Shown here one piece after another: positions 56,941 through 59,039 of a stretch of 64,000 nucleotides of DNA (within the stretch, counting starts at the first letter, position 1; each line of letters begins with the position of its first letter). Origin of the DNA: Selaginella moellendorffii (taxonomy: Eukaryota > Plantae > Lycopodiophyta); the NCBI RefSeq assembly GCF_000143415.4, contig NW_003314296.1, forward strand, positions 1,153,858 through 1,217,857, read 5' to 3'. Below the pieces are notes generated by a model, which saw nothing but the letters and a program-made list of their open reading frames with translations, ran no database searches and was not told where the DNA came from. Made by a program: the position numbers and the translations under genes.

Positions 56941-59039
56941 ATGGCGGCTCCTCCTCGCGCGAGCAGTAGCCGCGCAGCGGTCCAGGCGACCAATGACGAT
57001 GCCTCCGCGAGCAAGCTGTGAGTAAATCTCTCCCCCTGTCATTTTCTCTCGTGATGAGCATCAAAATCTACAACTTTCGTTCTACTGAACACCAGAATGG
57101 TGTTTGTAGAGAAGAGATTTGGTGCTGAAGAGTGAAAGAGTGGATTTTCCTTTCTTGTTTGAGATGATGATGATGAATCAGATTTCACATCCAACACTTG
57201 GACTGATTCGTCTGTGATGGCTTTCTGCAATTCTGAATCAGAGAAAAGCTGCTTCTTTTTTTTCTTGTAAGGCTCGATTGATGAAAACCTTTTGATGCTT
57301 TCTACTGATCGCTCGAGAGAGCGTGTAGAAAACTTTGGAGACCTGAGCTGACGAGCATTTCATCGGCATTAGCCCCTTTTTATCAAGTGATGATACAGAA
57401 AATAGCATCTTAGGACACCTTCCTACATGGCCTGGCCATGAATGCGAGTGAACCTGTACCTGATGATAGCATTTTGGCTCTATGATTCTTTTTGTGTATA
57501 CGCTATGCTGAGTTTTTGATGCTGAAGTTTCAATCGTATGAGAGCCACTATCTGTTCCTCCTGAGCTAACTTGATTCAACTTTAGATCCTGTGTAAGGAA
57601 AGGCTACATGACAGACAACTACGTTCAGTATTTCGTGAGAAGACCTGTTAAGAGGTCACCTTTGATCAACAGAGGTATGCGTATGATGGTTCTTTGCGAT
57701 TTTCAATCACATTGTTCTTCAGGGTACTTTGCTCGATGGGCTGCTATACGGGCGCTCTTGATGCAGTTCCTTTCTCAACCCAGCTCGAAAAGGAAGCAGA
57801 TAGTTTCTCTGGGAGCTGGTTTTGATACAACGTTCTTTCAACTCAACGTGAGCTTTTTTTTATTGCTATGAAAGTTCAGCTCACGCTATTAACAGGAGGA
57901 AGAAAATGCTCCGGATATTTTTATGGAGGTGGATTTCTTGGAGGTGACAAGTAAAAAGGCTATGATCGTTGCGGCGTGCAAAGAGATGGCAAGACACCTT
58001 GAATCCCCAGTCTTCGCCCCCGGTGCGTTTCTGTGCTGACTTTGTGCCAGGTTTTTTCTTATCTTGTTTACGATTGAATGGATAGGATTGCAGAAAAAGG
58101 GGAAATAAGCAGTGAGCACTACAAGCTCTTTGCTTGTGATCTAACAGACACCGCAAGGCTGGATGCTGTCTGCGAAAAGGCGGACTTGGACTTAAGGTAA
58201 TTCTCTCGACCCAAAGATGAGCCTTGCTGACATCTTTTTCTTACTGCAGTGCACCGACCCTGATTCTTGCGGAATGTGTTTTGATATACATGGATCCAGA
58301 GGCTAGTCGTGCACTTTTAAGATGGGCCGCGAGCAAGTTCTCAAATGCAGTATTTGTAGCATATGAACAAGTGAGCACTTTGCTATCATTCTTTGCGTCG
58401 TCTAATTCAGCCACAGATCCATGGAGAGGACGCCTTTGGGCAACAAATGATACGAAATCTCGAGGTAAAACTTTGTTCTGAGATGCAACGTTTTCACTGG
58501 TGAACTATCTTACATTCATAGAGCCGTGGATGTCCTCTACTGGGAATTCACGATACATCTACGCTCGAGTCCAAGATGAACCGGTTCTTAGAAACAGGAT
58601 GGAAGGTGAACCGTCCTTGTTCCAATTGTGAAGTACTAAATAATTCTTTCAACGCCGACAGAGGGCAGTGGCGGTGGATATGGACGAAATCTACAATCGT
58701 CACATCGATCCTGTTGAGAGGAGAAGGTATCAACTCACTGTTTTTCAGTTTTTTTATGCGCTTCCAACTTTGAGCTTTTCGTTTTGTCAGGATCGAGAGG
58801 CTGGAGATCTTTGACGAGTTTGAAGAATGGCATATCATGCAGGTAAAAGAGTTTTTCTCCTGTGAATTCTAGTTTCTCAATTCCATTGCAGGAGCACTAC
58901 TGTGTTGCTTACGGTATCATCGATGAGAATGTAAGCAGCATTCCCTGTTTTGTTCACTGTTCGCTCAAGAGTGTTTATCTTGCCTTGACAGGAAACGTTT
59001 GCTGGATTTGGATTTTCGCAAATCTCCAGCGAAAGCTAG
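56941..59039 (+). CDS. LCMT1: Leucine carboxyl methyltransferase 1 (PP2A methyltransferase); snoRNA host gene
   Basis: [59 protein letters not shown]. Intron 1 is 57018-57585. Confidence 0.93.
57046..57132 (+). ncRNA. Box C/D snoRNA, snR54/U59-like (18S guide)
   Basis: C box GTGATGA 57051; guide CAACTTTCGTTCT (57071-57083) antisense to conserved 18S AGAACGAAAGTTG; D' CTGA 57085; D CTGA 57125; terminal stem. Confidence 0.8.
57165..57240 (+). ncRNA. Box C/D snoRNA, double guide (25S and 5.8S)
   Basis: C box ATGATGA 57170. ATCCAACACTTGG is antisense to 25S CCAAGTGTTGGAT before D' CTGA 57203. TTCTGCAATT is antisense to 5.8S AATTGCAGAA before D CTGA 57233. Confidence 0.8.
57272..57356 (+). ncRNA. 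Box C/D snoRNA (25S guide)
   Basis: Stem GCTCG/CGAGC; C box TTGATGA 57278; TTGGAGACCTGA antisense to 25S TCAGGTCTCCAA; D CTGA 57348. Confidence 0.8.
57381..57468 (+). ncRNA. Box C/D snoRNA (25S guide, snoR10-like)
   Basis: Stem TATCA/TGATA; C box GTGATGA 57387; 15-nt CATCTTAGGACACCT antisense to 25S AGGTGTCCTAAGATG; D CTGA 57460. Confidence 0.8.
57476..57546 (+). ncRNA. Box C/D snoRNA, U54-like (18S guide)
   Basis: Stem GGCTC/GAGCC; variant C box TATGATT and D box ATGA; TATACGCTAT antisense to 18S ATAGCGTATA before CTGA 57508. Confidence 0.7.

Follow-up and report, generated by a model that had tools for sequence, protein, structure and literature searches.

A predicted polycistronic cluster of five box C/D snoRNA genes in intron 1 of the LCMT1 orthologue of Selaginella moellendorffii

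Intronic polycistronic clusters of small nucleolar RNA (snoRNA) genes were reportedly described from rice and Chlamydomonas in work by Liang in 2002 and by Chen in 2003 and 2008. Here we describe a 64,000-nucleotide (nt) stretch of the genome of the lycophyte Selaginella moellendorffii (contig NW_003314296.1, positions 1,153,858 to 1,217,857; hereafter the window), in which intron 1 of the orthologue of LCMT1, a protein phosphatase 2A (PP2A) methyltransferase gene, very probably houses a polycistronic cluster of five box C/D snoRNA genes. Of the 31 intronic snoRNA loci counted in rice, 16 lie in genes other than those for ribosomal proteins, and most of these hosts share a promoter type, with telo box and site II motifs, that has been reported for genes hosting intronic snoRNA clusters (Gaspin et al. 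2010, PMC3022908). Most snoRNA clusters of Arabidopsis are independent RNA polymerase II units with telo box promoters (PMC3022908). Like the rice and Chlamydomonas clusters, the LCMT1 cluster has several different C/D snoRNAs arrayed head to tail within a single intron, and its protein-coding host has a telo box and site II promoter and, as is often the case there, encodes no ribosomal protein. Unlike them, it belongs to a lycophyte. The cluster type is thus ordinary for plants. A literature search for a link between LCMT1 and snoRNAs, or for LCMT1 as a snoRNA host, found no report, and the host gene is what appears to be new; a putatively split U59 and a relocated 5.8S guide are of modest evolutionary interest.

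Anatomy of the C/D units

Five box C/D units of 71–88 nt (87, 76, 85, 88, and 71 nt for units 1–5) fill 72% of the 568-nt intron, separated by spacers of 32, 31, 24, and 7 nt (Table 1). Introns 2 and 3 of LCMT1 are 48 nt apiece, which makes intron 1 about 12 times the local size. As read from the sequence, every unit has a C box and a D box joined by a terminal stem of 4–5 bp, the arrangement expected of C/D snoRNAs. Boxes are canonical or carry one mismatch in units 1–4, and unit 5 has variant boxes (C box AUGAUUC, D box AUGA) that agree with the U54 family consensus. The intron carries five of the 15 plus-strand RUGAUGA motifs in the window.

Rfam was searched with the whole window at gathering thresholds and then permissively with 1 kb. 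These searches, which were independent of the first reading, recovered all five units on the plus strand, head to tail. U54 (RF00206) appeared in the whole-window scan as a full-length match at 57476-57546 (45.3 bits against a gathering score of 40, E = 2.5e-5). Units 1–4 gave full-length C/D matches in the permissive scan, all under gathering thresholds, and the blocks aligned in these matches were the boxes and the guide. An Rfam-based pipeline would detect the U54 unit and miss the other four.

Guide pairing and mapped methylation sites

No ribosomal RNA (rRNA) was found by Rfam in the window itself. The pairing reference was a set of land-plant ribosomal DNA (rDNA) units present in bacterial assemblies, in which complete 18S-5.8S-25S units were mapped by BLAST to an Rfam-defined unit. 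The search handles were a 15-nt 5.8S pattern for metagenomes and a 32-nt plant-type 25S pattern for the bacterial assemblies, and the matches were verified by Rfam or BLAST. Differences in internal transcribed spacer 2 indicate that the plant units stem from several species. Two complete non-plant rDNA units from metagenomes (L001 and L082, identified by Rfam) were unsuitable, because their sequences depart from the plant type in several target segments. At least 60 bacterial or metagenome-assembled genomes in the species-representative collection contained an exact match to the 32-nt 25S pattern (L121-L180). All 28 fetched stretches longer than 6 kb align to eukaryotic rRNA, about 19 of them as complete 18S-5.8S-25S units, and the plant rDNA in these assemblies looks like widespread eukaryotic contamination.

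For each D or D' box, the 20 nt on the 5' side were taken, and a contiguous duplex beginning at guide positions 1–3 was required. Six of the guides pair with plant 18S, 5.8S, or 25S rRNA over 10–15 bases, and their six target segments are invariant in 18–19 of 19 plant rDNA units. Shuffled guides reached a score of 13 once in 600 trials. As a control, every CTGA site of the window was scored on both strands (400 in total); five reached at least 13, three of them within LCMT1 intron 1, and only at intron 1 sites did a high guide score combine with a C box and a terminal stem. CTGA sites 55631 and 47577, minus strand, were rejected as chance matches: both lack a C box and a terminal stem, and one is located in a 50-nt intron. 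An alternative D box at 57343 (unit 3) and an alternative D' box at 57420 (unit 4) gave weaker pairing or an N+5 residue outside the known methylation sites; the unit 4 placement would move the target by two residues, onto a site without known methylation. The remaining guide regions (unit 1 D, unit 3 D', unit 4 D, and unit 5 D) had longest matches of 9–11 nt to rRNA and the window, within chance.

Methylation sites of Arabidopsis rRNA and their guides were taken from the RiboMeth-seq studies of Wu et al. 2021 (PMC8053127) and Azevedo-Favory et al. 2021 (PMC8583080). Positions in L125, the plant rDNA unit used for numbering, were converted to Arabidopsis positions under the requirement that one local offset put all neighboring published sites on the right nucleotide. 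The offsets were -1 for 18S 500–1100 (11/11 sites), +1 for 25S 1800–1900 (5/5), +2 for 25S 2600–2750 (6/6), and +2 for 25S 2790–2970 (14/14); the 5.8S offset of -5 agrees with A47. By these published maps (PMC8053127, PMC8583080), the N+5 residue of unit 1 D' corresponds to 18S Am978 (Arabidopsis guide U59; human Am1031, yeast Am974), that of unit 5 D' to 18S Gm599 (U54; human Gm644), that of unit 2 D to 5.8S Gm79 (snoR39BY; human Gm75), that of unit 3 D to 25S Gm1855 (U59; no counterpart listed), that of unit 4 D' to 25S Um2651 (snoR10; human Um4227), and that of unit 2 D' to 25S Am2912 (snoR31; no counterpart listed). All six predicted residues are therefore experimentally mapped 2'-O-methylation sites in Arabidopsis, which is far beyond chance because only about 2% of Arabidopsis rRNA residues are methylated. 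Judged against land-plant rRNA, the cluster has six candidate guides of the kind that its class demands, each 10 nt or longer, next to a D or D' box on its 5' side, and with N+5 on a residue methylated in Arabidopsis. The Arabidopsis guide family was also the one that Rfam had proposed independently, except for the 5.8S guide, for which Rfam gave human SNORD96 and not snoR39BY.

Each unit has a recognizable relative. Unit 5 is like U54 (SNORD54, AtU54) in scoring above threshold, in its variant C (UGAUU) and D (AUGA) boxes, and in its 18S Gm599 guide, and is unlike the U54 consensus in being about 10 nt shorter from the C box to the guide. Unit 4 resembles Arabidopsis snoR10 (RF00353), a single-guide RNA with a 5' guide to 25S Um2651. 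Its guide is conserved with the RF00353 consensus, but its D' box CCUA aligns to a consensus CCGA and its score is under threshold. The two guides of unit 2 are identical or nearly identical to the consensus guides of snoR31 and SNORD96, respectively: the D' guide equals the Arabidopsis snoR31 guide for 25S Am2912, and the D guide is identical to the SNORD96 consensus guide as far as the D box, with the snoR39BY site 5.8S Gm79 as its target. Unit 2 joins both guides in one RNA, unlike Arabidopsis, where snoR39BY pairs its 5.8S guide with a guide for 25S Gm814. Arabidopsis snoR31 is additionally assigned A31 of the U2 small nuclear RNA (PMC8053127). Units 1 and 3 are like AtU59a/b (RF00160, in clan CL00065 with yeast snR54 and human U59) in their 18S Am978 and 25S Gm1855 targets and in an internal stem between the D' and C' regions. 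By target they would work like U59, yet they are not formal members of the Rfam families.

The first-pass annotation, made from the sequence alone, had described an intron about ten times the local norm, tiled by five C/D units with terminal stems and with 10–15-nt guides to conserved 18S, 5.8S, and 25S segments, whose D+5 residues fell on known sites (snR54/U59, U54, and the 5.8S Gm). All of this held up, including under the Infernal/Rfam check that it had called for, where one unit passed its threshold and four further units were recovered as sub-threshold family matches.

Table 1 Features of the LCMT1 locus and its promoter region, in window coordinates. N+5 residues are numbered as in L125.
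Feature	Position	Strand	Structure or basis	Guides and pairing	Rfam match
Telo box AAACCCTA, promoter region common to LCMT1 and the divergent gene	56812..56819	+	exact match		
Site II motif TGGGCT, between both telo boxes	56843..56848	-	motif search		
Second telo box, about 21 nt 5' of LCMT1 ATG	56913..56920	-	exact match		
LCMT1 exon 1	56941..57017	+	ATG at 56941; 25 codons + 2 bases		
LCMT1 intron 1	57018..57585	+	568 nt, GT..AG		
Unit 1, U59/snR54-type	57046..57132	+	stem 57046-49/57129-32; C box 57051-57; D' 57085-88; C'-like UGUAGA 57104-09; D 57125-28	D' guide 57071-83: 13 Watson-Crick, N+5 = 18S A977; D guide decayed	snosnR54 (RF00473) 57047-57130, 33.4 bits, E 0.016; below threshold of 50
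Unit 2, snoR31-type with SNORD96/snoR39BY-type second guide	57165..57240	+	stem 57165-68/57237-40; C box 57170-76; D' 57203-06; D 57233-36	D' guide 57189-201: 13 Watson-Crick, N+5 = 25S A2914; D guide 57223-32: 10 Watson-Crick from position 1, N+5 = 5.8S G in AAUUG	57164-57242: snoR31 (RF01288) 29.8 bits, SNORD96 (RF00055) 24.9 bits; below thresholds of 44 and 43
Unit 3, Z159/U59-type	57272..57356	+	stem 57272-76/57352-56; C box UUGAUGA 57278-84; D' 57305-08; C'-like UGUAGA 57324-29; D 57348-51	D guide 57332-46: 14 Watson-Crick + 1 G-U, N+5 = 25S G1856; D' guide decayed	snoZ159 (RF00160) 57271-57357, 33.8 bits, E 2.3e-4; below threshold of 39
Unit 4, snoR10-type	57381..57468	+	stem 57381-85/57464-68; C box 57387-93; degenerate D' CCUA 57422-25; D 57460-63	D' guide 57406-20: 15 Watson-Crick, N+5 = 25S U2653; D guide without target	snoR31_Z110_Z27 (RF00353) 57379-57470, 31.7 bits; below threshold of 45
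Unit 5, U54	57476..57546	+	stem 57476-80/57542-46; variant C box AUGAUUC 57482-88; D' 57508-11; C' UGAUGC 57517-22; variant D AUGA 57538-41	D' guide 57496-506: 10 Watson-Crick + 1 G-U, N+5 = 18S G598; D guide without target	U54 (RF00206), above threshold
LCMT1 exon 2	57586..57674	+	76% identity to P0001 residues 33-61		
LCMT1 exon 3	57723..57847	+	Pfam LCM PF04072, E 1.4e-4; human LCMT1 structures 3O7W, 3IEI		
Later LCMT1 exon, conserved AECVLxYM motif	58251..58373	+	Pfam LCM; human LCMT1; yeast Ppm1		

Host gene, promoter region and rival explanations

The host gene model was searched exon by exon. Two exons fall exactly at the Pfam LCM (PF04072) cut-off of 22.3 bits each. Among solved structures, the later exon matched human LCMT1 (E = 7e-12) and yeast Ppm1 (E = 2e-4), with LCMT2 weaker or absent. 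The LCM domain, together with greater nearness to LCMT1 than to LCMT2/TYW4, assigns the gene to the LCMT1/Ppm1 type. Residues 9–25 encoded by exon 1 are 94% identical to residues 15–31 of an angiosperm LCMT1 fragment, P0001, which is labeled '[phosphatase 2A protein]-leuci' in one source, an incomplete name, and is presumably a PP2A leucine carboxyl methyltransferase. Residue 32 of P0001, left unaligned between exons 1 and 2, corresponds to the codon split by intron 1, so this is a true intron within the coding sequence. A CTAAC branch-point-like motif lies about 16 nt 5' of its AG. A word search with the 87-aa in-frame open reading frame (ORF) across exons 2 and 3 gave three fragments only, one of them from a plant. 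Exons 1 and 2 searched singly against solved structures gave no LCMT match, both being too short, and an antibody structure matched by one of these short queries was dismissed as spurious.

Two other reading frames touch this gene. Intron 2 (57675-57722, 48 nt) is in frame and free of stops, and exons 2 and 3 form one 87-codon ORF with it; its retention would therefore insert 16 residues and not truncate LCMT1. An antisense 113-codon ORF runs across the snoRNA cluster (57238-57579, minus strand). It is almost certainly spurious, and a prokaryote-style gene caller could take it for a gene.

Two exact telo boxes and a site II motif lie at most 130 nt upstream of the LCMT1 ATG, in a 200-nt region between LCMT1 and a divergent minus-strand gene (56400-56734). 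The window contains five exact telo boxes where 1.7 are expected, and the two in the promoter region are 100 nt apart. Site II motifs number 39 in the window, and this one hence fits the promoter pattern but is not significant alone. The combination of telo box and site II/TEF motif upstream of the host ATG is thus present, with the telo boxes as its only statistically notable part. A scan of the window for bacterial-type promoters and terminators, a type of scan not applicable here, found nothing. Exon 2 of the divergent gene has a weak match to the APH phosphotransferase domain (19.2 bits, under the cut-off), and the gene seems to resemble the N-terminus of IBR3/ACAD10-type acyl-CoA dehydrogenases. 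Further afield, ARAGORN and Rfam both placed a single tRNA-Ile(AAT) gene at 24675-24744 (minus strand), and an AT-rich block at 2000-8000 (GC 25–32%, compared with 44% for the whole window) could be a transposon or repeat region.

Several observations weigh against an intronic cluster of working guide genes. The rRNA paired with the guides is land-plant contamination in bacterial assemblies and not the host's own. Four of the five units are under their Rfam gathering thresholds, and the D' box of unit 4 is degenerate and was positioned by alignment to the family consensus. The 5.8S guide (unit 2 D) has only 10 pairs, a number reached somewhere in rRNA by 12% of shuffles. Minimum free energy folding z-scores are unremarkable in four units (unit 1 has -3.25), as is usual among C/D snoRNAs. 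Some of this would suit decaying pseudogenes, with some or all units dead, working copies elsewhere in the genome, and the long intron a relic. As such decay would predict, four guide regions lack a target, units 4 and 5 have degenerate boxes, and four Rfam scores are sub-threshold. However, six guides are perfect or near perfect over 10–15 bases, every terminal stem is intact, and the unusual boxes of unit 5 agree with its family consensus. Arabidopsis U54, snoR10, and snoR31 are likewise each listed with a single rRNA guide (PMC8583080), and the guide losses in units 1 and 3 complement each other, unlike random decay. We regard pseudogenization of some or all units as highly improbable. Chance resemblance of motifs in an AT-rich long intron has in its favor that CUGA is frequent, at about three per kb per strand in the window, but it was refuted by the tests run and retains next to no probability: the U54 match had its E-value in a search of the whole window against all Rfam families, five family matches tile one strand, and the six strong guides all fall on the small fraction of rRNA residues that are methylated in Arabidopsis.

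A different question is whether the snoRNAs belong to the LCMT1 transcript. Most Arabidopsis clusters are transcribed on their own by polymerase II from telo box promoters (PMC3022908), and here the telo boxes sit just upstream of the cluster, which could then be a transcription unit with its own promoter merely overlapping the 5' end of LCMT1. Against this, exon 1 matches the angiosperm LCMT1 N-terminus and joins exon 2 at a split codon. As the LCMT1 coding sequence spans intron 1, the LCMT1 transcript must cross the cluster. Only 104 nt separate the upstream telo box from exon 1, and within intron 1 nothing resembling a second promoter was seen, which leaves an independent unit quite improbable.

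To the gene anatomy, boxes, stems, complementarity to plant rRNA, and coincidence with mapped sites that we observed, established knowledge of plant snoRNAs adds a plausible route of biogenesis for an LCMT1-hosted cluster. RNA polymerase II would transcribe the snoRNAs within the LCMT1 pre-mRNA from the telo box and site II type promoter. They would be freed from the excised, debranched intron, or from the pre-mRNA directly, by endonucleolytic cuts in the 7–32-nt spacers. Exonucleases would then trim the ends until the C/D core proteins (Snu13, Nop56, Nop58, and fibrillarin) halted them at the terminal stems, and fibrillarin would 2'-O-methylate the fifth paired nucleotide at the equivalents of the six Arabidopsis sites. 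The LCMT1 gene would serve as the transcription vehicle, with no evident role for the LCMT1 protein.

Guide evolution and significance

Units 1 and 3 are the only pair of units with significant similarity (global alignment z of 4.5; 0/300 shuffles), and they match families of one Rfam clan, CL00065. In both, a UUCUAC near D' is retained and pairs with a GUAGAA near C', enclosing a small hairpin whose sequence is not the same in the two units. In Arabidopsis, U59a/b carries the 18S Am978 and 25S Gm1855 guides on one RNA (PMC8583080). The two Selaginella units differ from this arrangement: the 18S guide is kept in unit 1 alone and the 25S guide in unit 3 alone. In unit 1, the 3' guide still weakly matches the same 25S segment (8 Watson-Crick and 3 G-U pairs), one residue off, and the 5' guide of unit 3 has a 3-nt gap relative to unit 1. 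These features suggest that units 1 and 3 arose by tandem duplication of a U59-type snoRNA and then underwent complementary guide loss, with angiosperms as the only source for the ancestral state. A U59 split in this way would be a clear example of duplication-degeneration-complementation in a guide RNA. The 5.8S Gm79 guide, for its part, sits on a snoR31-type RNA (unit 2) and not on a snoR39BY-type RNA, and the two cases together illustrate how guides may be redistributed among snoRNA backbones. The family mix of the cluster differs from the order of the Arabidopsis table, in which snoR10-2, snoR29-1, snoR30, and snoR31 are consecutive chromosome 5 entries (PMC8583080). These consecutive entries hint at an old snoR10-snoR31 neighborhood.

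The first-pass annotation was also right that telo boxes lie upstream (two exact boxes within 130 nt of the ATG) and that the host is a PP2A methyltransferase, as the Pfam LCM, human LCMT1, Ppm1, and angiosperm fragment matches indicate. Its further proposal that rRNA modification is coupled to PP2A regulation divides in two. Co-transcription with LCMT1 stands, since the cluster is intronic, but nothing supports a functional link. The coupling overreaches the evidence. Rice also has many non-ribosomal hosts (16 of 31), mostly with the same promoter type (PMC3022908). A stronger version would hold that LCMT1 is no accidental host, and that one growth-regulated telo box promoter sets the capacity for both PP2A and rRNA methylation in an association conserved across lycophytes. 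LCMT1 controls PP2A holoenzyme assembly, a growth-signaling node, and on this view it would have gained a promoter of ribosome-biogenesis type along with the five snoRNAs. We think such an association unlikely; the split U59, though a lesser claim, has better support.

The general picture of plant snoRNA gene organization is unchanged by this locus. We found no snoRNA catalog for the lineage, and Selaginella is unmentioned in the main text of a 24-species plant snoRNA survey (PMC5122169); the cluster adds five confidently assignable methylation-guide snoRNAs. It also predicts six rRNA methylations in S. moellendorffii. For two of these, 25S Gm1855 and Am2912, the Arabidopsis map lists no counterpart in yeast or human, and the cluster implies that both sites are older than the split between lycophytes and seed plants, which would date them to the vascular plant ancestor or earlier.

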